Below are positions 13,851-64,000 of a DNA stretch of 64,000 bases, in pieces. The position numbers and the translations under genes were made by a program. Position 1 is the first letter of the stretch. Each line of letters begins with the position of its first letter. This DNA is from Eutreptiella sp. 'Long Island Sound 2002' (taxonomy: Eukaryota > Protista > Euglenida): assembly GCA_964036045.1 (NCBI GenBank), contig OZ038378.1, positions 3,348,001 through 3,412,000 of the forward strand, read 5' to 3'. The notes under the pieces are model-generated. The model was not told the origin of the DNA, searched no databases, and saw only the letters and a program-made list of their open reading frames with translations.

Positions 13851-13851
13851 C

Positions 13852-14983: not shown

Positions 14984-14991
14984 TTAGGGTT

Positions 14992-16271: not shown

Positions 16272-16568
16272 ATGGAGACCGAGGTGGTGCCCCAGCCCTT
16301 CCACATGCCTCTACCAAACCCCCCTGCAGGGCCGCCCCCCGTCCCTCCTGGGCCCTTGCCACTGCCTCTCCCGGCAGACACTGGCCCTCCCCCAGCCATG
16401 CCCCTGCCGAACCCTGCTGCCCCGCCGGACACCCCTGCCCCCCTTCTTGAGGACGTGGTCACGCAGCTGCAAATGAAGTTGGCCGGGCTGTCCACCGTCT
16501 TCTTTGACTCTCTGGGCTGCCTCCAGCGCGACGCCCCTCCTTTGGACCCTGACAACCCAAACCCACAG
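16272..16568 (+). CDS. MED21: Mediator subunit 21, exon 1 (Pro-rich N-terminal extension + conserved helix)
   Basis: DVVTQLQMKLAGLSTVFFDSLGCLQRDAPP matches the MED21/SRB7 N-terminal pattern (D..xQLQ...F...G.LQRDAPP). The exon is 99 codons and ends CAG|GTGTGT, phase 0. Confidence 0.85.
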
Positions 16569-18837: not shown

Positions 18838-19626
18838 CCAAGCTACAGTAGGCGTAGGGACCATAATAATTCTGTACGTAATTTGATTACGTACAAAATG
18901 TAGTGTGGCCACATAAGACATGGGTGTGTCGTCACATTTGCCAATTTCAGCACATGTGGCCCCCTGCTGGTGCACCAGGAATTTTTTATTTTTTTTGGTC
19001 TGATGCATCCCATAGGTCCTGAATTGCCAAGTTCAGCACATGTGGCCTGCGCACGTGTGTGTCGGCAGTTGTATGTGTTGCGCGCAAGCCACGCCCTTGT
19101 CCAAGCTACAGTAGGTGTAGGGACTGTAATAATTGTGTACCTTGGCGTAGCTTATACAAGGGGGGGGGGGGGGGGTACTGGCATTCGTCACACCGACGTT
19201 CGTCAGTTGAAGGTCGGCCCGGTCTGCAACTGCAAACGTTTTCGGTCCGGGTTGTGGGGTGCATTTGGTGTGGTCTTTCGCAGTGGAATCCCACCACTTG
19301 AGCAGGGAGGGTGATTGGGGCAGGAACATCGCAACCCCCCCCCCCTGTTTCGGGGACCCGGTTTCCCCGAATCAGCCTGAAACGTTAGCCCGAATCAGTG
19401 GTGAAGAGCGTGGAGATCACAAGTTTGAAGACCAGCAATGTTTCCATGCATTTTGTGTGTGCATTTGACAGTCCCATCAGGTCGAAAACTGCAGGAAAAG
19501 TGGAAAATTTTCCGGTCCGTGGGAAGGTGCGATTGAACTTGGTACCTCCCAAAGTGCCTCATACTGCCTCACACTGTGACGTACCACAGCCCCTGCCCCA
19601 TTCGCCTCGCACGTTCTGTCACGCAG

Positions 19627-25322: not shown

Positions 25323-25900
25323 TTATGGCATTTTTTGCAACATCTCATATGTCCTAAGAAGTAATGCAAATCGTTCGGTGGCATGAACGTTCGTTTGATC
25401 TTTGTCCGGGTGAAGCTTTACTGATAGGTGAAGATATTGCTTGCGGATGTTAGCTTTGTTTGTAGCCCCAAGCAATTGCATGCCAACTTCAAAATTGTTC
25501 TTGTCCAAATATTCATACATTGCCGGATATGAAGCAATGGGGAGATCAAGTGATACATGCTCTTCATCGTCATTGGTGAAAAGTTTGGGTTGATGACCAG
25601 TTGACTCCTCTTGGTGAATAGCATGCCTCTTTTTTCTCGGGGGTAATGCATATTCTTCATCATCACTAGTGATGGCCTGTGGTCGAATGTTGGTTGTTTG
25701 CTTTTCGTTGAGACCTTTGTGTGACGATTGCTCCTTGCCTTTCTCATGTTTGTCAAGTTGATTGAAACTTTTTGAAGCAACACACGAAGAACAACGCTTT
25801 TTGGTACCAAGTTTCCATTGGCTCTTTGTAAAGTCTGCACGCAACCGCTGGATACCACAAGAGAAGCATTGTAGTGCATCTTGCAATGAACGTTTGGTGG
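25323..25900 (-). CDS. Helitron polyprotein part D: Stc1-like finger + C-terminal J (DnaJ) domain
   Basis: CFSCGIQRLRADFTKSQWKLGTKKRCSSC, then IRKQYLHLSVKLHPDKDQ...ATERFALLLRTYEML with an intact HPD (25404-25412). It joins part C by a frameshift in the long T run at about 25906-25917. Confidence 0.75.
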
Positions 25901-31100: not shown

Positions 31101-32032
31101 CTTCCAATGAATCCACCTTCGCTAGAAGCAACCGAACCAAAGATGTTTTGGCATGCCGATTTTCCCATTGGAGAGTTGCACCGTGGACAACAAAGACACA
31201 CACGAACACCAAAGATGGTGGACATTGCCAAACGCACTATAATGCGAAATGCGGACATGCAAGCCAGGGGGTCTTGGGAGAGCATGAGCTTGCGTTGTTC
31301 ATATGATGGCAAAGCCGAAATCAATGAGTCAACTGGTAATTCCAGAGATGGATGTGCATGCCCTCCCCATTGTCTCAACCATGGTTGAGCTATGCAAACC
31401 GGATCATTTTGGCTTGTCCTTGATAGGCGAAGCATGAGCGTGTTGTGTCTCTCATTGGGAGAAAATGTGACAATGAGAGGGGCTCCATAAAAAACACGGA
31501 AGGCTTGGATTTCATGTCGCATCAAGCGGCGCACCTCATGTGTGCCTTCTATGCGCGTAGAAACATTTTGTACATTTTGTAAGATGTCTCTAGCTAGGGG
31601 GGGTAAATTTGGCACAAAGGGAACTTTTGACAAGTCACCGTTTACTTGGCGAAGAGAGCCATCTTTGGTGAGGTAGCTTCCGGTCAAACTTGCTGTTATT
31701 GCTTTGCTTGCATTGCAATACTGTTCTGCTGTAATTTGCTCGGACGCCAAAGTAGTACCATCACAAAGCCTTCCTTTGAAGATGTATCGAGAAAGATTAA
31801 TCACGGATCGGAAAATCAAGTTCCACGCTGCAAACACAAAAATCCAATCCCTCCTAAATTGACCCTCAATACGACGCACTAAAGCTGCCGCGAATTGTGG
31901 GAAGTCAACTCGAGGTGCATTGGAGTCACGTCTCCATTGCGAACGATTGCGTAAATCGGGGCTACCAACACCAAAATCAAATAAGAACGCAAACGCAATT
32001 ATTATGAAGCTTGGGTGTAGTTGGTCTTGCAT
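28148..32032 (-). CDS. Helitron polyprotein part B: HUH Rep endonuclease + N-terminal half of PIF1 helicase
   Basis: Rep motifs YGAPLIVTFSPNE and SIENQKEGVLHIHCLLW (about 31032-31079). Helicase motifs LHGGPGTGKS (about 28751-28780), IIIDEISMV, PFGGFNIILCGDFWQIPP and ELTENMRF. Confidence 0.9.
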   Translation of the reverse strand: MQDQLHPSFIIIAFAFLFDFGVGSPDLRNRSQWRRDSNAPRVDFPQFAAALVRRIEGQFRRDWIFVFAAWNLIFRSVINLSRYIFKGRLCDGTTLASEQITAEQYCNASKAITASLTGSYLTKDGSLRQVNGDLSKVPFVPNLPPLARDILQNVQNVSTRIEGTHEVRRLMRHEIQAFRVFYGAPLIVTFSPNERHNTLMLRLSRTSQNDPVCIAQPWLRQWGGHAHPSLELPVDSLISALPSYEQRKLMLSQDPLACMSAFRIIVRLAMSTIFGVRVCLCCPRCNSPMGKSACQNIFGSVASSEGGFIGRLDACLGSIENQKEGVLHIHCLLWPQCLSQFSSIHDISLLIKKEGEKLVKQYTAYKSYVCQEVYHDLCGFHMRRKILEDDWPEYDSTFSFLFRSPLCSLVTDTASDDMAMVHLWNVHYCKEVQTNLEHWNHHIHPLANTDDPEARRLLAGCVRKGEPNVCKHRFPRDKELVPEASILCYGLACQFGLKVTGQRNALGSLHGPRNCSWLNGTHPVLTSLLRCNSDVQVLYRLPICPETHSKFCTTPDTCLNELATSNTTIEIALQLAQDSAIGYFSDYVAKGTPIATKEITRWLRGHDNLSNDLQKTKRPNSIQYIARRHTQRFLSDTLARGTARGAVDVVNLMCNRRKDDVTAAECVKTAITTTFAGNKFVSLLERKNRNRPTKRIADKRVFRVSRTRKAASLQAVPDLAMMYGYRGKDPRVHWLSPYEFVSRWRLVPVSFPINPRLADGDPKYHADLTSEGRAYICTQKLEGEGYEFHPGKHFRIRNAGGTTWIPFPDLPPLEKVRHLWVMEYNPRPFVPMWIGSPMARNNDPEQTAKVCSAYFRPYCLHQDLASQHVPYVDALSDPKHAFHSSWKAYVSGNILTLHMKRVIQQFLYVSRVRCKDDILDSAEAKAIPPLKLDHTQLDTALNTKTAKKGANESKDKQISSDSVTGIKLAHEAWRATNLPNINFESNGPAPVYSNLRKLLQSARNTARAEPTTSKGFPTKTNLEPTVDPIPSISLSKVDAALAICIPQLNKGQQIFLQIVANRVKEEVSDDINGMHGSSEPLRWMLHGGPGTGKSKALGIVVQFFELLGYVKDKHFEIGAFQGKMARLIGGSTLHQLGAMNLFGNDASKEKSTFLFLRHCTLRWIIIDEISMVSPRLLAKFEERLRTHTQKAGTYKCDPDGTIRPFGGFNIILCGDFWQIPPPGEDFSLMSVPPSMIVEPTKKNPDALTSHGLNLLWGNASQGIQGMTELTENMRFQGDPRFQAALEECRHGKTT

Positions 32033-32140
32033 GGTGGTTCCTGTTCGAATGCAAAAAGAATCAATGCTGTCTTGCAGTGTCTCACTATCAACTGGCTCAT
32101 CACCAGTGGTGTTAGTTGGTTTGTCCCCACCCTGGCTTCT

Positions 32141-35100
32141 TTATGTAGAAACATGTGTCTTCGTGGAATCCACACTTTGCATTTCATATTCTTGCCCCGA
32201 CATGGCACTTATATGCGAAGAAAGGTTTGGAGGACTAGAACTTATGCTTTCCACTTCATCCTCGTCTGATGACATGTCATCTTTCGCGGTAGGGAACTTC
32301 AAGGCTTCTTCAACGGATTGGATACGATGTATACGTTGTTCATTGATGTCAACGGCGGAATTGGAGTATCTATCCAATTGCACGCCGTTGACATGGGACA
32401 GAAATATGTTGCCATCAATGGAGCGTCCGTGCTCGTGAGGTAACGCGGCCTTTCCGTCATGAAGGTCAGGGCCATTCTTGTGAGGCACTATGACCCGTAT
32501 GATCTCGGGAGGGATGCCATCAACCGGAAGGAGTGTTGATCGTTGTTCAACATCAACCATATTTATACCCACGTACGCGGGGTGGTTGCGCTCAATCATA
32601 CATGCTATCAAGTGTACGACCACAGCACGACGCACGCGCCCGTGCTGTACAACTAATTGCGTGTCATCTTGAGTGTGGCTTTCGACAACCACTTGCACGA
32701 GGCCAGCCAAATCCTCACCTAATCTGGGTAAATGATTCCTTCCACCATTTTGGGAAAATGTTTGGAGGACTTCCTCCCATGGCAGAGAAAAACAAGTGAC
32801 ATTTCCCTTTGCGCCAAGGCGTGTGTTTGACAAATGAGCTAAACTTGAGCCACTTACTCGGTCATTGAACCTTTGTAATGTCAAGCTCAACATTGCAGTG
32901 TTCACTGGACTGGCACACAACAATTCAATGTATGTAACTTGGTGCTCATAGATGTACTCATTAATGTACCCTATCCACATTTCATTTGCCAAAGCAAATG
33001 GAAGCATTTTTGGGCGTGGTCGGGATAATTCATCGGAGCAAGATGCACATATTGGCAATTCACATTTTGGACACAAGGGGCAATTCATGTCGTGTATGCC
33101 ACATGCATTACGAGGACATGCAACACAACGACGATCTTCGGGACAACATAGGACTTGAATAATTCCATCTGTGAAAGGAACATTCAGGCACCATTTGGTT
33201 TGTACTTGTTGTCTCATGCCACTGTCTTTGGTTCCGTAGGCATTGAAATATGTGGTGAGACCAAGTAATCTCTCGGTGTCTTCTTTGCACATCCCAAAAA
33301 AGGATCCTCCATTGTTGGAGTCCAATGGGGAATGCCATTGAATTGGTGGCCTTCCATGACATTCAAAATCCACACTATGAATTTGTGCACAAATGCTGCA
33401 TACGAGTGACATAATGTTTTCATCTCGGTAGCGCCGCGCGAATGAAACAGCAATGCGACGGTCAATTGCAAAACCAACCAAGGGCATGCGCTGACGTTCA
33501 ATGTGGGCAATGGCTTCTTGGTACAAATGGTATGCATCTTGCATCGTGATACAAGCATGTGATAATTCGTCAACGTGGGCAAAAGATGCTTTGTGGTGGC
33601 CCGTCACATGCTCGATTAAGCTAGCTTCGTCATCTCCTTGCCACGTGCAACCACGAAAAGCACAATGCTTTTGTGGTAGAACAATTCCGTTTGATTTCAA
33701 TTCATCCAAACAATTTTGGAAAGCCCATGGTATTGTGGGAAATGGCGACAATTCGGCAGATAAAACGCCAATGAAGCATTCCACTTTAGCCAGTGGGGAT
33801 GGTGATAGCGGTGAAGGAAGGGTTGCTAGCATAGTGGTGAATTGAAAGTCGGATGTTTGATCCGCATTAGCTGGTGACCCCGGCCTAGTATTGGGCACAG
33901 ACATTTGTGTATCTCCACTTTCATTTGAGTCATTGGATGTGGTTTTTGTGCAATGCGACTTGCTGGAACAAGTATCATCTTGATCATTGCAAGTGTCATT
34001 GGATTCATCAGACACGTGTTCAGCCGCACTCATTGCGCAGTCATGCATTGACTCATCATCCCCATGTCGGCTTTCTTGACCAGTGCAATTATCACTGAAC
34101 ATGTTGGACATGTGCTCAGTTGCACTGAATGTGCAATCATGTACCGATTCACAATCCTTGTTGGACATTTGCTCAAGTGCACTCATACCTTTGTCACTTG
34201 GATGGGCATTGTTCAAATCTTGAATTGTGGTTTTGAACATATACATGTATGGTGTGAAGTCGTCATTGTTCAGAAGCCATTGATTGGGCGCCTCAACAAG
34301 TGTGACACCTTCATCGTCACAGGCGTACCACAAACCTTTCCGTTGAGTCAAGCACACATAATGACCCGACAAGGTAGAGCTACCGCGGTGTAAGATGATA
34401 CTCATCAACTGCAAATGCAACACCTTATTTGGTGAGCCTACGGAACAATCTTCAATAGTAAAATGTGATGGGCACCCATAAAAACATTGTAGCTTTGAAG
34501 GTTGTTGAGTAGCTGCATTGAAAGTGAACAAGGACAAATGTATCATGATATATTGCGATGCCGTTATCAGTTGCTTTCGACGCTTCAAGCACGCCATTCC
34601 CGAACAAGCCGTACAATTTCCAACATTACTTTCTGTGGCAAATAAACTTTGCATGGCACCTTGTAAACCTTGTGTATTACTTACACCGACCGTCCAAGAA
34701 GAAATGTCGATGCATACTTGTAAATTGCCATATTGACAATTTGAGCATGAAATGGAATGTAAAACTTGGCTGCCTACTTTGGACATTGCTTGTGGTACAA
34801 AGGGGAATTCAAGAGTCGACGCCTCTGCTTCAGTGCGAACGTCTGCACTTTGCAATGGTAATACAAGGTTCCAAATCCACGCGAATAGCAAGCCCAGAAA
34901 TTCATGCACATCTTGTTGCCGGTTGTGTGTTGGATGGAAATGAACTAAGTACTCCGCAGCATGGGCAACATGAATTCGCAATTGTTGGTGACAATCATCA
35001 TTATTACCAAACGTGTATGGCGATTTGGGTGGCAGTTCTCCATTACCACATTCCATCAAAGCAATCAAAAGGTGTTCCACTGCAAGACGGATTTGAGAGT

Positions 35101-35227
35101 CTGTCTTATTGGATTCCAAGTCACTGCTCACAGAATCAACAAAAAGTGGGATTGTGCCAAGGAATTGGAGACTGGATGCCGCAAAGCAGCTGTTGTTCAT
35201 CCAAACTAGTCCATAATGCGCTGTCAT
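32141..35227 (-). CDS. Helitron polyprotein part A: USP/peptidase C19 domain, low-complexity linker, C2H2 finger, Cys cluster, DUF6570-like region
   Basis: Cys box GLVWMNNSCFAASSLQFL, QQDVHEFL, His box IILHRGSSTLSGHYVC...WYACDD, C2H2 CAFRGC...LIEHVTGHH, then FALANEMWIG...GNVTCF...VRRAVVVHLI. It is in the same frame as part B and separated from it by one TAA (32141-32143). Confidence 0.8.
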   Translation of the reverse strand: MTAHYGLVWMNNSCFAASSLQFLGTIPLFVDSVSSDLESNKTDSQIRLAVEHLLIALMECGNGELPPKSPYTFGNNDDCHQQLRIHVAHAAEYLVHFHPTHNRQQDVHEFLGLLFAWIWNLVLPLQSADVRTEAEASTLEFPFVPQAMSKVGSQVLHSISCSNCQYGNLQVCIDISSWTVGVSNTQGLQGAMQSLFATESNVGNCTACSGMACLKRRKQLITASQYIMIHLSLFTFNAATQQPSKLQCFYGCPSHFTIEDCSVGSPNKVLHLQLMSIILHRGSSTLSGHYVCLTQRKGLWYACDDEGVTLVEAPNQWLLNNDDFTPYMYMFKTTIQDLNNAHPSDKGMSALEQMSNKDCESVHDCTFSATEHMSNMFSDNCTGQESRHGDDESMHDCAMSAAEHVSDESNDTCNDQDDTCSSKSHCTKTTSNDSNESGDTQMSVPNTRPGSPANADQTSDFQFTTMLATLPSPLSPSPLAKVECFIGVLSAELSPFPTIPWAFQNCLDELKSNGIVLPQKHCAFRGCTWQGDDEASLIEHVTGHHKASFAHVDELSHACITMQDAYHLYQEAIAHIERQRMPLVGFAIDRRIAVSFARRYRDENIMSLVCSICAQIHSVDFECHGRPPIQWHSPLDSNNGGSFFGMCKEDTERLLGLTTYFNAYGTKDSGMRQQVQTKWCLNVPFTDGIIQVLCCPEDRRCVACPRNACGIHDMNCPLCPKCELPICASCSDELSRPRPKMLPFALANEMWIGYINEYIYEHQVTYIELLCASPVNTAMLSLTLQRFNDRVSGSSLAHLSNTRLGAKGNVTCFSLPWEEVLQTFSQNGGRNHLPRLGEDLAGLVQVVVESHTQDDTQLVVQHGRVRRAVVVHLIACMIERNHPAYVGINMVDVEQRSTLLPVDGIPPEIIRVIVPHKNGPDLHDGKAALPHEHGRSIDGNIFLSHVNGVQLDRYSNSAVDINEQRIHRIQSVEEALKFPTAKDDMSSDEDEVESISSSPPNLSSHISAMSGQEYEMQSVDSTKTHVST

Positions 35228-36271: not shown

Positions 36272-39200
36272 CCAAGCTGGTTCACACAACGGAGATCCAA
36301 GCTGGTTCAGAAAACGAAGATCCAAGCTGGTTCACACAAAGGAGATCCAAGCCGGTTCACACAACGGAGATCCAAACTGGTTCACACAATGGAGATCCAA
36401 GCTGGTTCACACAACGGAGATCCAAGCCGGTTCACACAATGGAGATCCAAGCTGGTTCACACAATGGAGATCCAAGCTGGTTCACACAATGGAGATCCAA
36501 GCTGGTTCACACCATGGAGATCCAAGCCGGTTCACACAATGGAGATCGAAGCTGGTTCACACAATGGAGATCCAAGCCGGTTCACACAATGGAGATCCAA
36601 GCTGGTTCACACAACGGAGATCCAAGCTGGTTCACACCATGGAGATCCAAGCTGGTTAACACAATGGAGGTCCAAGCTGGTTCACACAACGGAGATCCAA
36701 GCTGGTTCACACAATGGAGATCCAAGCCGGTTCACACAACGGAGATCCAAGCTGGTTCACACAACGGAGATCCAAGCTGGTTCACACCATGGAGATCCAA
36801 GCCGGTTAACACAATGGAGATCCAAGCTGGTTCACACAACGGAGATCCAAGCCGGTTCACACAACGGAGATCCAAGCTGGTTCACACAATGGAGATCCAA
36901 GCCGGTTCACACAATGGAGATCCAAGCTGATTCACACAACGGAGATCCAAGCCGGTTCACACAACGGAGATCCAAGCTGGTTCACACAAAGGAGATCCAA
37001 GGCGGTTCACACAACGGAGATCCAAGCTGGTTCACACAATGGAGATCCAAGCCGGTTCACACAACGGAGATCCAAGCTGATTCACACAACGGAGATCCAA
37101 GCTGGTTCACACAACGGAGATCCAAGCTGGTTCACACAAAGGAGATCCAAGCCGGTTCACACAACGGAGATCCAAACTGGTTCACACAATGGAGATCCAA
37201 GCTGGTTCACACAACGGAGATCCAAGCTGGTTCACACAATGGAGATCCAAGCCGGTTCACACAACGGAGATCCAAGCTGGTTCACACAACGGAGATCCAA
37301 GCCGGTTCACACCATGGAGATCCAAGCTGGTTCGCACAAAGGAGATCCCAGCCGGTTCACACAACGGAGATCCAAACTGGTTCACACAATGGAGATCCAA
37401 GCTGGTTCACACAACGGAGATCCAAGCTGGTTCACACAATGGAGATCCAAGCCGGTTCACACAATGGAGATCGAAGCTAGTTCACACAACGGAGATCCAA
37501 GCTGGTTCACACAATGGAGATCCAAGCTGGTTCACACAACGGAGATCCAAGCTGGTTCACACAATGGAGATCCAAGCCGGTTCACACAATGGAGATCCAA
37601 GCTGGTTCACACAACGGAGATCCAAGCTGGTTCACACAATGGAGATCCAAGCCGGTTCACACAATGGAGATCCAAGCTGGTTCACACAACGGAGATCCAA
37701 GCTGGTTCACACAACGGAGATCCAAGCCGGTTCACACAATGGAGATCCAAGCCGGTTCACACAATGGAGATCCAAGCCGGTTCACACAATGGAGATCCAA
37801 GCTGGTTCACACAACGGAGATCCAAGCTGGTTCACACAACGGAGATCCAAGCTGGTTCACACAATGGAGATCCAAGCCGGTTCACACAACGGAGATCCAA
37901 GCTGATTCACACAACGGAGATCCAAACTGGTTCACACAATGGAGATCCAAGCTAGTTCACACAACGGAGATCCAAGCTGGTTCACACAATGGAGATCCAA
38001 GCCGGTTCACACAATGGAGATCCAAGCTGGTTCACACAATGGAGATCGAAGCTGGTTCACACAACGGAGATCCAACCTGGTTCACACAATGGAGATCCAA
38101 GCTGGTTCACACAACGGAGATCCAAGCTGGTTCACACAATGGAGATCCACGCCGGTTCACACAATGGAGATCCAAGCTGGTTCACACAACGGAGATCCAA
38201 GCTGGTTCACACAATGGAGATCCAAGCTGGTTCACACCATGGAGATCCAAGCTGGTTCACACAATGGAGATCCAAGCCGGTTCACACAATGGAGATCCAA
38301 GCCGGTTCACACAATGGAGATCCAAGCTGGTTCACACAACGGAGATCCAAGCTGGTTCACACAATGGAGATCCAAGCCGGTTAACACAATGGAGATCCAA
38401 GCTGGTTCACACAAAGGAGATCCAAGCCGGTTCACACAACGGAGATCCAAGCTGATTCACACAACGGAGATCCAAGCCGGTTCACACAACGGAGATCCAA
38501 GCTGGTTCACACAACGGAGATCCAAGCTGGTTCACAAAACGGAGATCCAAGCTGGTTCACACCATGGAGATCCAAGCCGGTTCACAAAACGGAGATCCAA
38601 GCTGGTTCACACAATGGAGATCCAAGCCGGTTCACACAACGGAGATCCAAGCTGGTTCACACAATGGAGATCCAAGCCGGTTCACACAATGGAGATCCAA
38701 GCCGGTTCACACAATGGAGATCCAAGCTGGTTCACACAACGGAGATCCAAGCTGGTTCACACCATGGAGATCCAAGCCGGTTCACACAATAGAGATCCAA
38801 GCTGGTTCACACAATGGACATCCAAGCTGGTTCACACAACGGAGATCCAAGCTGGTTCACACAATGGAGATCCAAGCCGGTTCACACAATGGAGATCCAA
38901 GCCGGTTCACACAATGGAGATCCAAGCTGGTTCACACAACGGAGATCCAAGCCGGTTCACACCATGGAGATCCAAGCCGGTTCACACAATGGAGATCCAA
39001 GCTGGTTCACACCATGGAGATCCAAGCTGGTTCACAAAACGGAGATCCAAGCTGGTTCACACCATGGAGATCCAAGCCGGTTCACACAATGGAGATCGAA
39101 GCTGGTTCACACAACGGAGATCCAAGCTGGTTCACACAACGGAGATCCAAGCTGGTTCACACAATGGAGATCCAAGCTGGTTCACACAACGGAGATCCAA

Positions 39201-39700
39201 GCTGGTTCACACAACGGAGATCCAAGCTGGTTCACACAACGGAGATCCAAGCTGGTTCACACAATGGAGATCCAAACCGGTTCACACAACGGAGATCCAA
39301 GCTGGTTCACACAACGGAGATCCAAGCCGGTTCACAAAACGGAGATCCAAGCTGGTTCACACAATTGAGATCCAAGCCGGTTCACACAATGGAGATCCAA
39401 GCTGGTTCACACAACGGAGATCCAAGCCGGTTCACACAACGGAGATCCAAGCTGGTTCACACAACGGAGATCCAAGCTGGTTCACACAACGGAGATCCAA
39501 GCCGGTTCACACAACGGAGATCCAAGCTGGTTCACACAATGGAGATCCAAACCGGTTCACACAACGGAGATCCAAGCTGGTTCACACAACGGAGATCCAA
39601 GCTGGTTCCCACAACGGAGATCCAAACTAGTTCCCGAAACGCATTACGCAATGGAGATCCAAGGCGGTTCACACAACGGAGATCCAAGCCGGTTCCCACA
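36272..39700. repeat. Homogeneous 25-bp satellite (GGAGATCCAAGCYGGTTCACACAAY), roughly 135 copies
   Basis: Continuous 25-bp periodicity with no unique spacers. The long ORFs here are artefacts. Confidence 0.97.
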
Positions 39701-40311: not shown

Positions 40312-43039
40312 ATGCTTGACATACAGGGGGTGTACTGCACACGGCCGCAAGACATCGCGACCGCATTTAAGGAATTCTGGGAGCAAGTCATGAAAAAACC
40401 AGACCAGTCGGTAGAACAGTGCAGAGAGTGGATGGAAGGTCTGGGGATACCGCGCAGGGTGCGACAGGCATTGCCCAAGCTGACAAAGAAAGTGTCCGGG
40501 GACACGGTGCAGGCTGCGCTCGAGCGCATGAAGAAGGGATCGTCGCCGGGATTAGACGGGATCCCGGTTGAGGTCTACTCAGCAATGGCAGAGGTGTTCA
40601 TCCCTCCTATGACTATAGCGATCAACAGCTGTCTTCAACAGCGTCAGGCGCCAGCACAATGGCTGGTGAGCTTGCAGCGAAATATACCAAAGGGTCGGGC
40701 AGCGGACACAGTTGGCGAGATGCGACCTATTGCATTACAGACGGTGATTTGGAAATGGATGGCAACAACCATCCTAGTCCTCATAGAGGACGCGTTACAG
40801 GTAGCAGTGCCACCAGCCCAAAAGGGGTTTTTGAAAAATAGACAAATGCTCCAGCACATAATAAACGCCAAGGGCCTGTGGCACTCGGAGACAGAGGGCA
40901 CATTTCTGTCAGTGGACTTCGCCAAAGCTTATGATTCAGTATCACACAGCTTCTTTGCAGCAGGCATGCAGTTCTTGGGAATGCCGACTGAGATCACAGA
41001 GCTTCTGGTACATTCACTGTCAGGACAAGTGCAGTTCTGTGTGGACAATGGTGTGGTTCCTGGCATATCCATGCAACCGGAGTCTGGGATTCGCCAAGGC
41101 GACCCACTATCCCCGCCAATCTTTGCGTTACTAACAATCTTCCTGGTGTACCAGTTCCGGAAACGGTGTCCGGAAGCACAGCTAATGCTGTATGCAGATG
41201 ACTTATTAATATGGATACCTGGGGGGGATGAGGAAGCTCTGAATCAGGCAGAACGAGCTATGAATCTGCTCAATGAATTCGGGAAGTTCTCGGGACTACA
41301 TGTCAATCCGTCCAAGTCTTTTGCGGTACTCAAACGGGTGTGCGGTCCGTTGCCAGAGCGCTATGTTGGGTTGGAAGTGCGGGAAAGAGTCAAGTACCTG
41401 GGTGTTTTAATCGGACAGGTGAATGCGGAGCAGGCCTATGCTGGCCCAATGGCTAAAATGAAGTCCAGGGCGACTTTTCTGAAAACATTACCATTGGATC
41501 TGTGGGAACGTGCGGAAATCTACAAGGTGTGGGTGCAGCCTGTGGTGCAGTTAACAGCACGAGTGTATGAACCATCACAGAAGGTATTGACGACTCTCAA
41601 TGTTATATTCAAAATTGCCTTGGGGATATCCACGTGGGACCTCAGTCCAGCGATGTTGGCGCTGCCGTACAACCAGGGTGGAGTGTGGACGTACCCACTG
41701 GCTGTCTGGGTGCGATTTCAGTATGGGCGCTTGTTCCAATCTGTTCTAAAGGATAAAGTGTGCTTCTCAGGCCAATGGGTAGCGAATTTCGAACAGTGGG
41801 CGGAGTCAATTGGGCTGTCCCTGAGGCCGTCCTTCTTGCCATATCTGCAGCTAGCTGTGGTAAAAATGAGCGCACGAACGTGGCTGCAAGCATCAGTGCT
41901 CATGTTTTCGCGGTTGCGCCAGCGGGCGGCAGCTCCGCCCTTGGTGGGAATACCCAGCAACATGCCGCTGTGGCACAACGTGCTCTTCAGAAACAAGTTG
42001 GGGCATACCTATTATTCTCCGAGTCTCGTGCGCAAGGGGATTAGCACTTTGGCACAAATTGTGGAGGGAGGAGAGTTGCAGGCGGCGGTGAAACTACCCC
42101 CGACATGGACGCCGGTGTATCAGACAAAAATACCACAAGTGCTAGCTTTACCGGTGCAGGATTTGCCTAAAGAGTGGACGCAACCAAATCAGAAAATGCT
42201 AGCAGTGCTTTGTCCGCTGGAGCCGCCACAAAAACGGCAGGAGCCAGAGGTGTGGGAACAGTTGGCACAACTCAAGCTACCGGGGGCGCAACGAGATTTC
42301 ATGCGAAGGGCGCTGTGGAAAAAGCTAGCGGTGGGGGCGCGCACGCAGCACGCCTATCATCAACCCAACTGCATCTTATGCTCTGTACCCGAAACTATCA
42401 AACATGTGCTTACAGCGTGCAAATTCTGGCCAGTGGCCGTGGATATTGTGCGTAAAGCCTTTGGCCCGGTATGGGGCCGGGACGGGGCCATGTGCCCCAT
42501 GGATACGTTGCTTGTGGCTCAGCCACTGCTATCGCTGAGCACCACGCAGGGACTGGCGCTATGGGCTGCGGCTAGAGCGTCCTGGGTCCTGCGATGTGAT
42601 GCAAAATTTAGATCGCTGTCGGTGGCAATGCCTGACTTTGTAGTAGCCTGGATGACACTTGTAGAGGTGTGGGCGTCGGCACCACAGTCATCATTTGTGA
42701 GGCAAGAGGCCAAACATCTGTGCAACTGTCTTAGGAAATTCTTGGATGGAGATCAGCCATTTCCCTCCATGCAGCCACAGGGGGCAATTGTCAGAGGACG
42801 GGGGGCACAAGTGCCAAAAAAGGCAAAATGGGCATCGGTTTTGCCGAGCCTGCTGCAGAAAATTGACGCTAAAGCACAGCAAGGATGGGATGTGGCTTTT
42901 GTTGATGGGTCCAAGCAGGAGACAGGTGGTGTGCATCATGCAGGCTATGGTGTGTGGTTTGGGGACAATGACGAACGCAATGAGGAGCTGCCGCTATTGA
43001 ATACAGAGCGGCAATCTATAACTCGGGCTGAGCTGAGAG
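40312..43039 (+). mobile_element. L1/Tx1-like non-LTR retrotransposon ORF2 (RT, zf-RVT, RNase H); endonuclease missing at the 5' end, 3' end lost in the gap
   Basis: SSPGLDGIP, MRPIAL, SVDFAKAYDSV, GIRQGDPLSP, YADD (41191-41202), GLHVNPSKS, KYLGV; CILCSVPETIKHVLTAC; AFVDGS...AGYGVWFG...RQSITRAEL. The frame is open for ~909 codons. Confidence 0.93.
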
Positions 43040-43239
43040 NNNNNNNNNNNNNNNNNNNNNNNNNNNNNNNNNNNNNNNNNNNNNNNNNNNNNNNNNNNNN
43101 NNNNNNNNNNNNNNNNNNNNNNNNNNNNNNNNNNNNNNNNNNNNNNNNNNNNNNNNNNNNNNNNNNNNNNNNNNNNNNNNNNNNNNNNNNNNNNNNNNNN
43201 NNNNNNNNNNNNNNNNNNNNNNNNNNNNNNNNNNNNNNN
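43040..43239. other. Assembly gap (200 N)
   Basis: Run of n. Confidence 1.
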
Positions 43240-45315
43240 CCCCCACCCCCCCCCCTAAAAAGTGGGTTTCAAGTGGGGGGGGTCTGGGGGGGTCCGGACC
43301 AAAAAACTCATTGGGGGATGCGTTTATTGGACAAAATAATGATTTTACAAGGGGTTAAACTAACAATTCAACCCCTTGGGGTAGGGTACGCGAATAGGCC
43401 CAAATGGGGGGGTATGTGGCGTTTTCCCCATATATACGCCCACCTGGCTTTGATCTAACAACCTCTGCGAGGTGATTTTACAAGGCGCCGAACCCGCCGA
43501 AGCTGATTTACACTGTGATACTATGTTGCAGTTTGGTGGTGCTATCCCCCCCCCAGGGGGGGGAACTGTCACGACACTGGTGGGGAGATTACAGGGGGGG
43601 GGGGGTAAGGTACATGCAAAACCCATTCTGTGGGTGACGGTTGGTGAAGTCGGTGTTGGGGGGGGGGGGGGCGCAGCTGATCCCGTTCACCCTCCCGAAG
43701 AGAAAGGATAGACGACCTTGACCTTTGCGGGGGGGGGGGGGGGATGACAAAGTGAGTACACAGGTGTGGTTTGTGCACGAGAACTGCAGCCGTCCGGACG
43801 TGTAGTCAGAGCTTGCTTTGGGGGCTGGCCTCAAACCTTGTGCGACCATGCAGGGCATGGCCCACAGTGAGGGAGTACGTAGCAATCCTAATGGTGCCGC
43901 AATGCATACATGGGCATGTGCCCTGTATTTCACATGCACCAGCGCCCATGCAATGGCAGAGGGGTGGTAGTAGGGAGCCGCCCGCTGCGGCACATTTATC
44001 AAGTCCTGCAGGACAGGCATGCGAGTGTCCCTTGGGGCTCCCTGCAGACCAACTGAGCAGCGACGGAGGTTTTGTGGTTGGAGGCCTTCCTCCGCAACGG
44101 TGGAGTCAAAGATCAGAATCATATCCCATGTCCGCTCCACGCCATGGCACGAAGCCATATGAAGAACGGCAGCGCTTGCCCCCGAGGACGGAGGCACATC
44201 TGCGTCTTTCCCCACTTTTGAGATCATCAACCTCACCGCTCTCTTCTTTCTCCTCTCTCTTCTTGGAGCAAGAGCTGAGCGGCCCCCCTCCAGTGTACTT
44301 GCGTGTCCAAGTTGGCTTAACTCCCCCTCGCCCCCTGTACCCACCAATTACAGCCCCCCCCCCCCCCCCCGCGCGCCTCTCACTGCTGCATTTACTTATT
44401 ACCAAATTGGTGGCATGTCCCTCTCCTCAGTTTCTGCCGATAGCAAAATCTGTGACCGCAGACGCGCTCAGTGTCGCAAAATGCTTTTTAGAGAGGAAAG
44501 TTGAGGTCTAGCGAATCCAGTTGAGGCGTGTGGCGTTCAGTAGGTGTGTATACCCGTGCCCTGTCATGGGCTCGCCCCTTAGGTGGGCGCCCACACAGGG
44601 GTCTGAGCATGGGCGTTGGCATGGGGCATTGGCAAGGATCTGAGCATGGGTGCATGTCTTTGTGTCATCCTGGGCAAGAGGATGGGCAAAGCTGTGTGTC
44701 AGCGCCGACCACACACTTTTGCTGCGGTGCGAACAGAGCCGAGCGGTATGATAGGGGACCCTACGGTTTGGTTTCGGATGCGCCTGGGCATCACAAGGCG
44801 TGACACAGATGCACTTGGGCGGAGGCTTCATACCCCTGGACCCAAGGATAGTCTCACCAGGCTGAAGGACCGGATCCAGGGATCTAGGTCTTTTGGTGAC
44901 CATTGCTGCTGGACTCAGTATGGCCGGCGGTCCTGCATGAGTACTGACGCCGCTCCCGCTGACCATCCTCTGTTGTGCTGGTGCGGGTGTTGGTACTGGG
45001 GCTCGCCAAGAGGGGTGGGGCAGGGGATTGAACCCGTCTTTTGCCCTGCAACGAACCCCTGGCGCACCAACATCCTGAACCCCAATAGCCCAATGCGCTC
45101 CTTAACATGGTGTTACCACCATCGTGTGCACACGCACACACGCCAACACACACAAACCGGCCAAAGGGGGGGCGCAGGCGCCTCCTTTCACTTTTACCCA
45201 GTGATCGGGGATGGGTGTATACCACAACGCCCGTACACAGGCACGCGCAAGCACACGCACGCAACCAAGGTGATGCCATCAGCGCCGCAGGCAGCACAAC
45301 TAGCACAACCACACT

Positions 45316-49502: not shown

Positions 49503-49526
49503 TCCGAAGTTGGGTACCCACCCTAA

Positions 49527-49980
<454 letters not shown>

Positions 49981-56900: not shown

Positions 56901-59105
56901 TAGCTTATCCCCATTCTGTGTTATGGTCTCCTTGTGCACCGGTTCCCATCAACAGGCTACAATTCTGTATCCGAGAATTTCAAAAAACATTATTGGAAGT
57001 CGGTTGCGCAAAGTGGGAAAGTGCCTTACCCATACATCAAACTCACATAAACATACCCCCCTCACCCCTTGCGCAAGCACGCTGAAAGTCAGGAAAACGA
57101 CGGTCACATGGGGTTGCCGTGTTTAGACAAGACAGTGCCCACAAGAGGAAACTTAAAGAAGAAATCAGGAAAACAACGGTCAGACGGCGTGGTTAGACAA
57201 GCCCGTGCTTGTGCAAGGGGAAGGGGGGGTTCTGGTGAGGACAAGGGGGCAATGGGTTTGCAAGGTTTTCTCGTGTGTGTGCATTCAATTATGGTCAAAG
57301 ATTCCTTGAAGGTGGCATATGTTCCAATCCATTGCCCTTGGCGTTACAACCTCTATTGGACCGCAAATTAACTGTGTGCAATAGGCGTCTGTAGAATCGG
57401 CTGTTTCCTTCAAATGCAAATTCATGGTCTCGGGCCCGGGAACCTTGTCCACCGTTTGACTCGGTTTGTGGCTCCAGTGTTTATGTTTAGGGGGACAAAA
57501 ACGCGGTAATTCATCTCGGGAATGACACGAAGTCCCTTCTTCGTGCCACCAGTGATTTTCCTTACTTGATAATTAGTCGGTTGTCGACACGATTGCAGAC
57601 ATGGCTCATAGGACCCACGGTTCTGCTACCGATAGTGTCAATGGCAAATGGGTGATTGATTTTCGGTCACTATTTGCACAAGGCTAGCTAAAATCAGTAC
57701 ATGTTGGATCAAGGCACACGTGGGCTTTGTGGGCAACCACTGTGTGGAGTCATCTGTTAAATCTTGTTCGTTTGCCTCCCTTGTGTTGCCGAAGCAGGTT
57801 GCTGCCCCTCGTGGGGTTTGTGTTGCTCTTAATGGTACACCCTTTGGAGGCAAAATGGGTGAGCCACACAAATTCTCTCCTTCACTCGCCATGATCACAC
57901 TACATTGCATGAGGGGTGTTCATTCAACTGGGCTAAAAGCTTCACCTTTTTGTCCAGTCTTGTGTTCAAACAGTCGGCTCGCCCAAAAACTATGAACGGC
58001 TACAAAAACAGTGGGGCCCTCTGCCCTGATGCGTGCCCGAGGTGCCTAAAAGGTCACCACATGTGTATCATTGTGACCTTTGCAGCCCCCTCAATGCTTT
58101 CCGTGCCTTGCTGGTCTCAGCCACCTTATGGGGTTGTTGTTCAAAAATGGCTACATGGTGACCGCAGCCTGCGAGACTTACACCATTTTGCTTGTACTTA
58201 CCCCTCCTACCCCTTGTAAAAGCTATGCAAAAGTCCCAAATTAATCCGGTCCCTATGCCTTCGGGTGCTCGGATAAGGCCGTAGATGCCAAGGTCCAAAA
58301 AGAGAAGATTGCATGGTGAGCTAGTGCAGGAAAGGGCAATATCATGCACAAATATCCCCAAAATCAGAGCTACGTATGTTCAAATGGGCAAACACTCACA
58401 ACAAACGCTCACGAGGGGGGCCGTCTCCTCGGTTCGGGTACGCGACTCCCCCCCCCCCCTAGGGGCTTTCGGCCCACTTCTACTGGGGGGGGGGGAGTCG
58501 CGTCTAAAAGCGAGGAGACGGCCCACCCGTGCAAACGCTACGCCCGGGGGAGTAGTCGGCATGGACACGCCTCCTCTAGGTCAGCTGATATGCCGTTGGC
58601 CACCCCACAATTGCCTAGGGCACAGGCCCGGCTAAGCCTTGCACTCAATTGGGCCCACCCGCACTCCTTGATTGCATTGGCATAGGTGGTGCTGCTTAAG
58701 GCTGGGTGGTGCCCCACGGTGGATTGGCTGCGCGGTTGGAGGGGCCCCGGGGCTCGCTAAGTCTTAGCCCACGCAAACTGCACCCCCTTTTGGAAGAGGA
58801 AGACCCAAAGAACGACAGCCCGAAAAACTATTCCTTTTGGACATTTGCAGCACACATGACCCAGACACCACCAAAAAAATACAATTCCACCCAATTTGCT
58901 GCTTTTTTCCAGTTTTTGTTCATTAAAATAAACTATTATTTTGTCTGATTTGAAGGGTGTGTTTTACCAATCTTGTCGTTTTTGTATTTCAAAAACCAAC
59001 TAGTGCGTGCCTTTTCAGGAGCTCATTTTCTAAAATGACATTCTGCGGGTCTCCAGTTGCACCTATGTTTGTCCCGCAAAATAAATTGCTTTTTTATGTC
59101 CCTGA

Positions 59106-62100
59106 GTGCGCGAGGCCTCGCGCACTCAAGGTCACGGAAACAATTGTGTACGGAAGACAACAAAAACAGGACACGAAGTGCACAACGTACAAGCACTGAA
59201 ATAAAAGCTTGGCAAAAATGTACAAGCCCTTAAGGGCATATAATTGCATTCGCGTCGAAGGCGAGTGCGCGAGGCCTCGCGCACACATGACTGCAAAAAG
59301 AGGCAAAACACTTGGGTTAATGGTGACTTACTTCTTCTTCGGTCCTGCAACCTTAGACAACCTGGAACCCAGGTTTCTTGCCACCGCACTTGTCCCACTT
59401 GGGGAGGCAACGGTACCACGAGACGGCTGGGCACCAGAACGCGAGGGCGGCTTGAACTCTGCACTAGCACTCGCAGCAGTCTTCGCTTTCTTCTTCGGCG
59501 GGTCCTTACCCGAATCGGGACTTGCATCGAAGTGAGCGGCGGGTGCCCGCTTGCGCTTCAGCTGGGTCTCCAGTACTTGCTCCGGATCCTCTTCTTCTTC
59601 CTCCTCGTCGGCATCATCGTCGTCTGATTCTCCGGGCTTGTCCGATTCCTTCTCTTTTCCTTTCGCCTGCTTCTTGCTACCCGAGGGGGTTCCTTTTCCG
59701 GCCGCAGTTCCCTGAGTTGGTACGGCTTTGGCAGTCTTCTTCACCTTGGCTTGGCTTGGCAAGGTAGGTGCAGGCGCAACAGGCTCAGTGTCGTCAGCGG
59801 GGGCCTCAGTCACGACCTGTTCCTGGACGGCTTGTGCGGCATGCACCTTCTGGTGCCCTTCATACCCTCGGTTGCTGTCCAAAACCCACAGTGGAATGCC
59901 ACGCAAAAGCCACTCTTCTTGAGTATCCCAAGTTGCAGCTGTTGCTCCCTGCTCCGTCTGATCGGCCTCCAACATGTACCGCATGATGATCGCATGCTGC
60001 AGAGCACCTCTAACGGCATTCGCAAGGTCCTTTTGCTCGATCGCTGACACGGCCAGAAACGCCACTTTAGTCCTCCCCGACTCGTCGGACATCGCAATCT
60101 TTGCGGCCATGGCAGGCGTGTCATCCACAACAACCACTGCATCAGCATGCCCACTGTCCAAAAGATATTCGTCGAGGTACCACAGCACGTGAATCACAGG
60201 CATGAAACCACCGAGGTTCTTGTTCTGCATCTCTTCGAAATGTCCAGCGGAATACGTCACATAGTTCGGCAACTGTAAATGCGATGAATAAAGACGAATA
60301 ACGGAGGCAGCAGTGCGCGAGGCCTCGCGCACACAACGGCATCGAAACTGGCGAAAGAAGCAGATATACCTGCTTATCCCAGCGACTCGTTGTTCCGATC
60401 CACATACAATGCTCGTCAAACCGATACATGTTGCTGGTCACGGGACCCGATAACCAAGAGTATACCGGCAACCGGGCATGGTAGAAAGGCGCTGTGGTTG
60501 GATCCTTGTCCTTCTCCATATGCCACAGCCTCTGCATGTCGCGGCCAATACGGTGCACAACATCAGCCTCGCCATAGAAAATGACGTCCTTCCCCAGCAT
60601 CATCACATCGAACAGCCACTTCGGAACAAATCCTGCAGAGTCATATTCCACGAAAAGGTCAGCGTTGATGACCCACAACGGGTACTGCAAATCCCGGAAA
60701 CAGGCTAGTGGTGTCTCTTCGATATCCTCAATACGGCATGCCGTCAAAGCGAATTTGCTCCCTTGTTCGTCCTGCTTGGAGACATTGATCACGTCGCCAG
60801 TACTCAACTGTGTCTGTGGCGGTGCCGATGATGGTGCCTCAGTCTTCCTTTGCAGTTGTTTCCGCACGGCCAGCGTCTGCGGTGATGGAGGTGCGCCCTT
60901 GTCCCCAGTCCGCCACAGAGGTGCACCGGTCAACGTCTTCCACTTTGGCCACGGCGACCGGTACCTCGTACTTTTTGCGTCTTCCCAATAACCCCAATTT
61001 CCCAGGCCAATCTTCAGTTGCGTCGTGCCCAGCGCTGCGACTTCTGCTCGGATCTTCGCATCGGCAGCTGTACAGATGTGAAAAAGGTGGTTGAGTGCGC
61101 GAGCCCTCGCGCACTGAAGCTGCGAAACTGACGCATACCTGCGGTCTGGTTGACATACTGCTTACTGTCCGGATGGTCAAGATGGAAAATAACCCATTGT
61201 TCCGTAATCAGCGCGTCAATATAGTTCTGGGTGGTGCGTAAGGTCGAGTCCTTCAGGTTCATGTGCGCACAGACTTTCTGCAATAAACTTGGTAGATGCA
61301 GCCCTTCCAGCTTCTTGGCATTCCTTGTAACGTCCTCTTTCTTGCTCTTAGTCTCGAGGTTCTTCATACCAGTAACCGCCTCACGGCCGCAGTGATACGC
61401 CAGGGAGAAGATGTCCCTCCAGTTCTTGAATGTCGAGTCCTGCGAGGGAAAACAGTGTCATGGAGTGTGCGAGGCCTCGCGCACTGTAACCGTGCGATAC
61501 ACGACTACATACTGTGTGTCCTGGTTCCTCCAAAGCCTCGGGTGCAAGAAACGCAGAGTTGACGGCAGCCTGGACAACAGCAGTCTTGAACCGTTCGAAA
61601 TCTTGTGGCTCTTTTTCCGGCTTCTGGTCCTCAATGTACAACAACATGTTGTCCAGCGCCTCGGACAGCGGAATCCACGTCACAGATTGGCTACCAGCTT
61701 GTTGCAATCCTGCAACCTTGGCCCGGATCCTCCAAGGCGTTTCGTACTTGAGAATGTCAACATAGCAAAACTCCTGCCACTCCTCCAATTCTTTGCCTTC
61801 TGCGAGCCGCATTTGCTGTATCGCTCTGCATGTTTCTGTCCCATGTTGACCATTCAGAACGTAAAGCGAGCCATCTGCAACGCAAATCATGTACCACAGC
61901 CAAGAGAAGAAATGTCTTTGATCGAGCGCGAAGCGAGTCATACCACTATCCTCCCATGCCGTTACGCGCAACGGTCCAGGTGGTGGCAGTGCTTGGTATC
62001 CCGCCACTTTCTTGGCAACGTCGTCGTAGTTGATGGATCAGATCTGTCCTCGCTCCTTGGTCTTGTCAATCTGCAAATCAGTAATCTTTACCTTCACTGC

Positions 62101-62520
62101 TTTACCATTCTCCTTCCGCAGCCACTGTTGAACGTCGATTGTGAGCTTCATCTCCGGTATTGGCTTCTTCTCACCCTTCTTCTTGCGTCCTTTCTTCGGC
62201 GTTTCCCCTTGGTCGGTCCCTGGTGACGACTCCATGGCCTCTACGTCTGTTGCTGAACGTTCTGGCGACCCTGGTTGACTCATGATGCCAAGAAATGCCT
62301 GAAAAGGGCAAATGGCATGACATGAAACACGGTCATTTGAACTCCGAAATCAGTCGAAACGGTATTTTGCAGGTCGTTTTCGCAAATCTGTTGCACAACC
62401 GTCTTTGCTGTGACCAATTCCACCGGACTTAGCGACCTACTCAGTGCGCGAGGCCTCGCGCACTCACATCGCATTACGGACCTGTTTTTCGTATCGTTTA
62501 GTGCGCGAGGCCTCGCGCAC
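59106..62520. repeat. Seven dispersed copies of the 20-bp palindrome GTGCGCGAGGCCTCGCGCAC
   Basis: Copies at 59106-59125, 59265-59284, 60313-60332, 61095-61114 (1 mismatch), 61465-61484 (1 mismatch), 62444-62463 and 62501-62520. Five extend to 22 bp (A...T) and the first to 26 bp. Confidence 0.97.
59328..62283 (-). CDS. Five-exon gene (62283-61944, 61874-61513, 61439-61139, 61067-60370, 60272-59328; 882 codons) encoding an N-terminal ParB/Srx-like domain, a central domain weakly resembling an inactive N6/N4-MTase fold, and a Lys/acidic tail; one in-frame TGA at 62038-62040
   Basis: Four GT-AG introns (69, 73, 71 and 97 nt) exactly reconcile the frame shifts between the listed ORFs, and the exons sum to 2,646 nt. 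RGQI[*]SINYDDVAKKV...PPPGPLRVTAWEDSDGSLYVLNGQH resembles ParB-like Q.R...Y.I.DG.H patterns. Domain calls are by eye. Confidence 0.75.
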
Positions 62521-62532
62521 TGCGGGTGTCAG

Positions 62533-64000
62533 TTACCGCAAGCGTTGCCGCACGTTGCGTGTTGCTGCTTCCTGTCTGTCGGCATCCATATCTGTTCTCC
62601 GCCCCACAACAGCATCCAGTTTCCGTTTCAGTTGGTTGGTGGGATTTGTTTTCTGGTCAATGAGGGCATCCAGTACGTTGTGACCAAGTAGCCGGTAGTG
62701 GTCGTAACCAAGGGGTTGTGTTGGTGAGGGTGGAAATCTCGGTAACCTCCGCGGCCACGAAGTTGCAACGGTGCTGACTCGGTCGGACTCCCATTCCACA
62801 TAGGCCATGCAAATCCGGCAAAAATCTTGTCAGTCGTTGTCGCATCCTGTGTACCAGGTTGTGGGGAACGTTTTGCACACCCACGCGCTTGCCACCAGGA
62901 CCAACTTTTAGTAACAAGTAATGGTTTTCCACCTCCTCAACAGTAAAAGAACCGGTGTTTTTCGCCTTGTCCCGCACGAGCTTGCTCAACATCCCTTCTC
63001 CAAACTCCTCTGAGTGTGCCTGACCGGGCAGGTCCTGGTGCCACTTGCTGTTGTACAGCAATGTGCACATGATTGTGCGTTCATACTTCAGTACGGTGTC
63101 ACACGGTCCTCGACGCAGCCTCCGCAACAGACACAAACTCAACTGCAACACCTCCTGAGCTCGTGACCCTGTACCGTTGTTTTCCCCCGACCAGTTGCAT
63201 TCCCGTACTAGGTGACCCAAGTACAACAACAATGGGCACCATTCCAACAACAAATGCAAGACTGCGTTTGCCACAGCTGCCCTGTTGGCATGCGCCGTGT
63301 CACGACCACTGATTGCAGTTGCAGCTTGTGCCTTGCGACGATACGGGCGTAGTATTCTGGGTGTGGCAAGCATCAGCGCAGCAATAGTTTTTTCCATAAC
63401 TATTAGTTTGGGGTATGATAGTATGGTTGAACCAGGGCGTAGCAGACCTTTCCGTAGGTAGTTTAGAATAGGCCAGAACACCCGAAAAGTGTGAGTAACA
63501 ACAAACTTGTAGGCATGCCAAACACCGTAAACTACAGGTACATAACGCAGGTAAGCACGCATGTTCCATCGTTGGTTCTTGGCACCGTACAAAAACTTTA
63601 GTATCCTGTAGTGTATGTTTTCGTCAACCAACAGCGGTAGAACTCTGTTTGTCTGTTGTGCTGTGTCCTTTGCAAAGTGCAACAAGTTTAACAGACCAAC
63701 ACCACCAGTTACCTTTTCTTTTGACAGGGCAAACGGGCGCCACACCGGTGCCTGCACAGTCCTTGCATCCCTCCTCACATCCAACGGTGCTCTCACGTTT
63801 CCGGTGTCTGGTACACAACCATCCGCATACCCCATGTCACGCAGAGTCTGGGGGATTCTCCGTTCACGCTGTTGCACAGCCCTTGCAACTGTCGTTATCC
63901 GTGCTGCCAGGTCCTCAATGGCTGGATGTCCTCAGTACATGGGCCTCTGTTTCAGTTGAAGTACTGCCATTGCGGTACAGTTTTGCGACCGGTCACTTTC
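62533..64000 (-). pseudogene. Probable DDE-type transposase, 5' end outside the window; one upstream in-frame stop and a frameshift near 62815
   Basis: PLLVDENIHY (putative D), YGVWHAYK 36 aa later (position and form of the xxH motif of CMC/hAT/MULE/P/Kolobok-group transposases), SEEFGEGMLSKL (putative E). The C-terminus continues in ORF 62533-62808. Confidence 0.5.

Follow-up and report, generated by a model that had tools for sequence, protein, structure and literature searches.

The last 5.2 kb of a 64,000-nucleotide stretch from the euglenid Eutreptiella sp. 'Long Island Sound 2002' (contig OZ038378.1, forward-strand positions 3,348,001 to 3,412,000; hereafter the window) hold the 3' part of a DNA transposon with two genes, here called A and B, and along this element a GC-rich palindrome of 20 nt is repeated. 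A preliminary description had noticed the palindrome at the midpoint of three consecutive short introns of gene B and treated it as a feature of those introns. The three intronic sites are real, but four copies of the same motif that lie outside introns had been overlooked. We find that the palindrome is a signature of the transposon, specific to each family and kept under selection as a dyad.

A two-gene transposon with terminal inverted repeats

Pieces of the open reading frames (ORFs) of the locus have hundreds of relatives at 70–95% identity, all on megabase contigs of the ENA assembly ERZ25074135. So many relatives within one assembly identify the locus as a repeated element. A full-length transposon of this family, F1, measures ~6.9 kb; the reference full copy, L003:8908-15764 (6857 bp), is bounded by terminal inverted repeats (TIRs) of ~25 nt starting with CTTAG and is flanked by the 5-bp duplication CGCAT. 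The terminal 22-mer of the window copy, at 58763-58784, is found identical at the ends of copies L001, L002 and L003. Two copies of a sister family, F2, have perfect inverted repeats of 30 nt and duplications TCACA and TCTTT; a second sister family, F3, is represented by the full copy L013:4553-10917. Over the copies of F1, F2 and F3 the TIRs measure 25–30 nt, and the 5-bp target duplications flank three full copies. Inverted repeats, target duplications, multiple copies and a predicted DDE fold with invariant D, D and E (see below) are together those of a class II TIR transposon, and the element and its ends can be considered as established. The window copy itself is decayed: what the window contains of gene A is broken by one frameshift and one in-frame stop, and gene B has one in-frame stop. 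A search of the window against Rfam returned no family.

Some observations concern the immediate surroundings of these copies. A reverse transcriptase gene upstream of copy L002 raised the possibility of a DIRS-like retroelement, which we rejected: this gene, which has an integrase core, is part of another, long terminal repeat element, and the transposon has its own TIRs and target duplication. The reference F1 copy is nested in an F3 copy on the opposite strand (L003:~7100-19000), having inserted into the first intron of its gene B, and F3-type palindromes are found on both sides. Just outside the 3' end of the window copy, two perfectly inverted 19-nt arms with C11/G11 runs stand 26 nt apart (58440-58503), and a similar C-run motif is found 2 kb from them (56445-56463); this may be the end of another repeat.

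Gene A codes for a DDE transposase, as judged from its predicted fold. A profile search collected 1153 relatives of gene A, while it has no match in Pfam or NCBIfam and PDB sequence searches gave noise only. The AlphaFold model (AF2), built on an alignment of 38 sequences, is of good quality—predicted local distance difference test (pLDDT) 89.8, predicted template-modelling score (pTM) 0.81—and its best Foldseek matches in the PDB are the transposases of the Drosophila P element and of Hermes, a hAT element (E 0.008–0.4, probability up to 0.98). For the P element the probabilities are 0.98 (6pe2) and 0.75 (6p5a), with template-modelling scores of at most 0.41, which is weak. The invariant residues are D149, D288 and E494/E497; in the model D149 lies on the first strand, D288 after the fourth strand and E494/E497 on the helix next after a large helical insertion, a layout that appears to be that of the P element/Hermes class of DDE transposases. 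The N-terminal part of the protein is predicted to be helical. None of the 38 family members has a THAP, BED or hAT-dimerisation Pfam domain, and neither RAG1 nor Transib structures are found among the top 50 PDB matches of the model. At the level of the predicted fold, we regard the transposase as established.

Gene B is split into five exons by four short introns, all of the GT..AG type, and its frame, as read from the sequence, stays open across every junction. Its exons are conserved in F2 and F3, and also in L008 and L007, two more distant relatives presented below. Searches were run exon by exon: gene B has no match in Pfam (E<=10), NCBIfam or the PDB profiles. A relation with ParB/Srx, prompted by an invariant GQH motif in exon 2, found no support in any of these three sources, nor in the precomputed Pfam assignments of 120 listed relatives.

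Distribution, conservation and co-variation of the palindrome

In the window, the palindrome GTGCGCGAGGCCTCGCGCAC or a variant with one mismatch is found seven times, against 0.00 expected in 64 kb. All seven sites lie within the 5.2 kb of the transposon, four of them outside introns, and the motif is absent from the remaining 58 kb. The full F1 copy adds the 5' part of the picture: three sites upstream of gene A, two between the genes, three in introns and two downstream of gene B, i.e. seven of the ten outside introns. The F2 copy L004 has the same 3+2+3+2 arrangement, mostly with the variant TTGCGCGAGGCCTCGCGCAA, and the full F3 copy has a 4+3+2+3 arrangement built on ATTGCGAGGCCTCGCAAT. 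A full copy thus carries 10–12 palindromes in F1–F3, and in the wider superfamily each family has 10–13, of 18–26 bp each. Their placement relative to the element ends is also shared: in F1 and F2, 196–197 nt separate the 5' end from the start of the first palindrome, and in F1, F2 and F3 the last one ends 342–348 nt from the 3' end. Three or four palindromes lie 500–900 nt upstream of the first start codon and, in F1, palindromes closely follow both stop codons, at 13 and 44 nt. Outside the elements, neither the window nor the flanks of the fetched loci contain the motif, apart from chance matches with two mismatches.

The families that share this arrangement are far apart. F2 is about 46% identical to F1 for gene A and 30–46% for gene B, the proteins across F1–F3 are only 30–47% identical, and apart from the palindromes hardly any of the families' subterminal DNA can be aligned. 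When 32 sites from F1–F3 are aligned, the palindromes nevertheless display a 12-nt core, GCGAGGCCTCGC, in which six columns are invariant and the other six at least 90% identical. The arms change symmetrically: 53 cells are doubly changed, compared with 28.6 in shuffled alignments, a value exceeded in none of 500 shuffles, and the pairing of the arms collapses when the partner is slid. Examples of such co-changes are U-A/A-U at 16:12 and C-G/U-A at 17:12. The four central nucleotides vary (GGCC, GGGC, GCCC) while the stems are kept, and some family sites carry fixed mismatches that are not wobble pairs. A 13-nt remnant in intron 3 of F2 (L004:13397-13409) resembles an F1-type palindrome deleted of its centre. 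Its outer arms are still of the F1 type, in contrast to most intact F2 sites, whose arms have changed; this suggests that the intact sites changed together. We take as established where the motif occurs, how far it is conserved and that its arms co-vary symmetrically.

Old copies of the palindrome (61465-61484 in the window, and sites of L002, L003, L005 and L012) deviate from perfect symmetry mostly by CG to TG or CA changes, which suggests that the host methylates CpG and that the sites decay by deamination. The repeated unit exceeds the palindrome, forming a family of 37 nt with a TTTCG-like flank. We considered the palindrome as a miniature TIR element bordered by target duplications, and rejected it: the flanks extend the inverted symmetry and contain no direct repeats. 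Shallow literature searches brought up no account of such an arrangement; they returned one irrelevant primer match for the core motif and nothing pertinent for transposon palindromes in introns.

More distant relatives of gene A, at about 25–36% identity, are found on contigs from four other samples, each with a palindrome of its own. L008 has 13 copies of TGCGCGCCNNGGCGCGCA; L007 has 11 copies of TTCGCTCCATGGAGCGAA, mostly paired about 68 bp apart; and three further palindrome types occur in L010, L011 and L009, mostly upstream or downstream of gene A. The motifs of all families contain a CGCG or TCGCG core. In L008, four palindromes are in frame within the ORF of gene A (L008:1238-1936), three of them within 86 nt, and are translated as LRAQARN-like heptads which, in the protein alignment, are not lineage-specific insertions. 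This presence in coding sequence points to a pressure for having sites along the element. In L007, two introns of gene B (L007:4398-4547 and L007:4948-5101) share a module of ~85 nt containing two palindromes ~68 bp apart, and equally spaced pairs recur upstream of gene A and in two further introns.

The introns of gene B deserve separate attention, as they were the starting point of the preliminary description. Its measurements are reproduced: the distances from the palindrome to the 5' and 3' splice sites are 28/25, 24/27 and 37/40 nt in introns 2, 3 and 4, CAGTTTCG is present upstream of the palindrome in both introns 3 and 4, and the half-site reported in intron 1 is real; on alignment it corresponds to the right arm of the full palindrome that F2 has in its own intron 1. 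The centring within 1.5 nt thus holds for the three introns of the window; under uniform placement clear of the splice signals it would be obtained by chance with a nominal probability of 0.0006–0.003. It is however a post hoc pattern of one family, inherited by the F1 subfamilies, and it does not extend to the sister families, in which the offsets from the midpoint range from -8.5 to +8.5 nt. The distances are 32/21, 34/17 and 27/20 nt in F2, 15/32 and 18/30 nt in F3, 10/34 nt in L008 and, for the palindrome pairs of L007, 51/41, 22/42, 27/41 and 61/35 nt, so that the offsets across families span -12 to +13 nt. No intronic site comes closer than 10 nt to the 5' splice site or closer than 17 nt to the 3' splice site, and between these limits the sites seem scattered. 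Exact centring is not a conserved property of the system.

The occupancy of the introns varies as well. F1 has palindromes in introns 2, 3 and 4, intron 1 having only the half-site remnant; F2 in introns 1, 2 and 4, with the centrally deleted remnant in intron 3; F3 in introns 2 and 4, with none in 1 and 3; and L008 in intron 4 only, as two adjacent copies, with none in 1, 2 and 3. In L007, four introns of gene B contain two palindromes each and the remaining introns none. On the other hand, the positions and phases of all four introns are identical in F1, F2, F3 and L008, and the introns compared measure about 67–74 nt with or without a palindrome. As these positions are shared with relatives lacking palindromes there, and as the length is unaffected, the introns are older than the palindromes and did not form around them. 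The proposal that they arose, like introners, around palindrome insertions is thereby refuted. Introns 2–4 of F1 have in common only the 20–22-nt palindrome and the TTTCG-like flank, not a near-identity over their whole length, and the ends of the gene B introns show no inverted repeats or target duplications.

Table 1. Features of the window (positions in the 64,000-nt stretch)
Feature	Position	Strand	Remarks
TIR DNA transposon copy, family F1, 3' 5.2 kb	58763..64000	-	~92% identity (blastn) to copies L001 and L002; 5' part past the window end
Gene A, DDE-type transposase by predicted fold	62533..64000	-	cut by the window end; 91–95% identity to proteins of 400–665 amino acids
Two palindromes between gene A stop and gene B start	62444..62463, 62501..62520	.	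motif search
Gene B, five exons, without recognisable domain	59328..62283	-	frame followed across four GT-AG introns
Intron 1	61875..61943	-	69 nt; no full palindrome; remnant half-site 61924-61934
Intron 2	61440..61512	-	73 nt; palindrome 61465-61484; one CpG-type change in the window copy
Intron 3	61068..61138	-	71 nt; palindrome 61095-61114, central variant common to all F1 copies
Intron 4	60273..60369	-	97 nt; palindrome 60313-60332
Two palindromes downstream of gene B stop	59106..59125, 59265..59284	.	motif search
3' terminal inverted repeat of the window copy	58763..58790	-	+ strand reads CTTAGCCCACGCAAACTGCACC
Five bases flanking the element 3' end	58758..58762	.	expected position of the target-site duplication; partner copy outside the window
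BTB and NHL-repeat ORF	8223..9716		host-gene-like
Probable Helitron	25753..35227	-	three long ORFs in a block of lower GC (45–47%); one with Helitron_like_N and PIF1 helicase, one with UCH protease and DUF6570
Tandem array	26156..27046		78-nt unit, 11 copies
Satellite, 3.4 kb	36272..39633		25-nt unit (Tandem Repeats Finder periods 50 and 75, 93% matches); strong AT skew
Retrotransposon of the long interspersed element (LINE) type	40312..43458	+	ORF of 1048 amino acids with RVT_1 and zf-RVT
AAC microsatellite	49526..49980		455 nt, about 153 copies

The other features of the window, also listed in Table 1, are repeats and mobile elements of several kinds and one ORF resembling a host gene. The long ORFs listed within the satellite are artefacts of the repeat.

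Possible roles of the palindromes

Our preferred interpretation is that the palindromes act in cis as dyad sites, recognised by a dimeric protein which the transposon itself encodes, and are not devices for splicing; we give it a probability of roughly one half (0.5). The evidence is indirect and comes from sequence comparison: the conservation of the sites, their symmetric co-variation and their conserved spacing. In particular, the core is kept and the arms have changed together although the proteins are only distantly related and the subterminal DNA cannot be aligned, which we count in favour of this reading. The candidate binders would be the helical N-terminal part of the gene A transposase or the product of gene B. 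Through such binding the element's own DNA might be recognised and drawn together, or genes A and B might be regulated, or both. Gene B, 3 kb long, would hold sites in its introns only because these are the sole non-coding DNA inside it; and in introns of ~70 nt a site that must avoid both the 5' splice site and the stretch from the branch point to the 3' splice site would be left with the middle. The suggestion of the preliminary description that the introns let binding sites sit within a gene without disrupting it fits the evidence in this respect, the binding itself being putative.

Several observations weigh against protein binding. No DNA-binding domain was found: gene B is without match in Pfam, NCBIfam or the PDB profiles, and the helical nature of the gene A N-terminus is a prediction only. 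The Foldseek E-values that relate gene A to known transposases are weak (0.008 and above). A dyad symmetry with symmetric changes is equally expected of a hairpin, in RNA or in DNA. In F1 and F2 the 2.5 kb of gene A are devoid of any site, so that the sites need not be evenly distributed over the element. Finally, F1, F2 and F3, which have the core in common, all reside in the same genome, and the binding factor may be one of the host.

The hairpin is also what the preliminary description had in mind when it proposed that the palindromes bring the splice sites together or gate splicing. In a broader form, the palindromes would act as RNA hairpins in the transcripts of the element, by shortening or gating the splicing path in introns, by marking or stabilising 3' ends after the stop codons, or by feeding small RNAs. 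The variation of the central four nucleotides with conserved stems agrees with this, as do the compensatory changes of the arms and the sites close behind both F1 stop codons. So does the formation of the hairpin—a GC-rich stem of 8–9 bp with a loop of 4 nt—in the minimum-energy structures of introns 3 and 4 of the window copy. It forms in these two introns only, however, and the folds of whole introns are not significantly more stable than those of shuffled sequence (z from -1.8 to +0.9). Comparison of the families brings no support either: a hairpin controlling splicing would be expected in introns specifically and with a conserved geometry, while the motif is present upstream of, between and downstream of the genes as well, its intronic offsets differ from family to family, and several homologous introns without palindrome, of the same length, fit splice models equally well. 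The sites far upstream of the first start codon are likewise difficult to place in this scheme, and the non-wobble mismatches fixed at some family sites are not what the maintenance of an RNA stem would predict. We therefore hold a role as RNA hairpins to be unlikely.

A host protein could read the sites instead, for instance a transcription factor recognising CGCG, or the sites could act as CpG-rich marks against silencing; the palindromes, those of introns included, would then be promoter or enhancer modules. The CGCG or TCGCG core common to all families, the clustering of sites upstream of both genes and the 12-nt core shared by three families of the same genome would be understood in this way, and the CpG-type transitions by which old copies mostly decay indicate that the host probably methylates CpG. 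But a common host factor hardly accounts for arms that are specific to each family and have changed together within one host genome, nor for the absence of copies outside the elements; we find this somewhat less likely still than the hairpins. Another view is that the palindromes are selfish or neutral micro-repeats which, as short modules, spread within the element through duplication or gene conversion and are tolerated where they are harmless. The repeat unit extending beyond the palindrome, the recurrent two-palindrome module of L007 and the in-frame copies in coding sequence are all in line with such a spread. It is opposed by a core perfectly kept across families whose surroundings have diverged beyond alignment, by the conserved distances to the element ends, and by a copy number (10–13) and a layout that are the same in every family; we judge it the least probable of these alternatives.

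Comparison with known systems

Subterminal repeats are known from two-protein plant transposons, such as the TnpA sites of En/Spm and the subterminal hexamers of Ac, and the palindromes seem most similar to these. In both cases a TIR transposon carries, in its non-coding DNA, many repeats of a short motif, arranged as dyads or in both orientations, and encodes a second protein besides the transposase. The present motifs differ in being perfect palindromes of 18–26 bp which occupy the spacer and the introns too, up to 3 kb from either end; moreover the element has a 5-bp duplication and CTTAG ends, not CACTA, and is not known to have sequence similarity to those transposases.

For the transposase, the best structural matches are with the P element and hAT (Hermes), with which gene A appears to share an RNase H-like core and a large all-helical insertion before the catalytic E. 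Points of difference are the duplication of 5 bp and not 8 bp, the lack of any THAP, BED or hAT-dimerisation domain in the family members searched and the weak Foldseek scores. The weak fold similarity to Hermes, together with the duplication and the lack of a Pfam match among the 38 members, does not make it a member of the hAT superfamily. Transib elements are characterised by a 5-bp target duplication together with a RAG1-like core; no RAG1 or Transib structure appears among the top 50 PDB matches.

In the KorB/O_B system of plasmid RK2 and in ParB/parS, a palindrome present in some dozen scattered copies is read by a dimeric protein that the replicon itself encodes. The transposon likewise has about a dozen palindromes along its length, and KorB/O_B serves us as a working analogy. 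It does not go as far as kinship: the element is a eukaryotic chromosomal transposon and not a plasmid, and gene B matches no ParB/Srx domain in Pfam (E<=10), NCBIfam or the PDB profiles.

With introners, the gene B introns have in common to be short and to contain a repeated sequence. They are not whole-length copies of each other, sharing only the palindrome and a short flank, and their positions are ancient, not recent gains, being common to relatives without palindrome; their ends, as indicated, are without inverted repeats or target duplications. We consequently do not class them as introner-like. Mobile GC-rich palindromes are also known: the bacterial repetitive extragenic palindromic (REP) sequences, the Rickettsia palindromic elements and the GC clusters of yeast mitochondria. 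Like these, the palindromes described here are short, scattered in non-coding DNA and occasionally in frame in genes, but each type is confined to one transposon family and co-varies with it.

Repeated binding motifs near transposon ends are thus already known. What is unusual here is a conserved dyad motif distributed throughout an element, which is present even in the introns of gene B and in certain lineages in coding sequence as well, and whose arms change symmetrically between sister families of one genome. We tentatively propose, while giving it less weight than the binding itself, that these elements form an undescribed superfamily of two-gene eukaryotic DNA transposons, in which a palindromic 'barcode' private to each lineage, laid along the element and co-evolving with a dimeric binder that the element encodes, would keep sister families functionally separate within one genome. 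The case also shows that introns can owe a conspicuous feature simply to the fact that non-coding DNA happens to be available there. Public data contain over 1000 relatives of the transposase, and these transposons offer a natural comparative series for the co-evolution of an element with its recognition sites and for the way cis-acting sites are fitted into genes.

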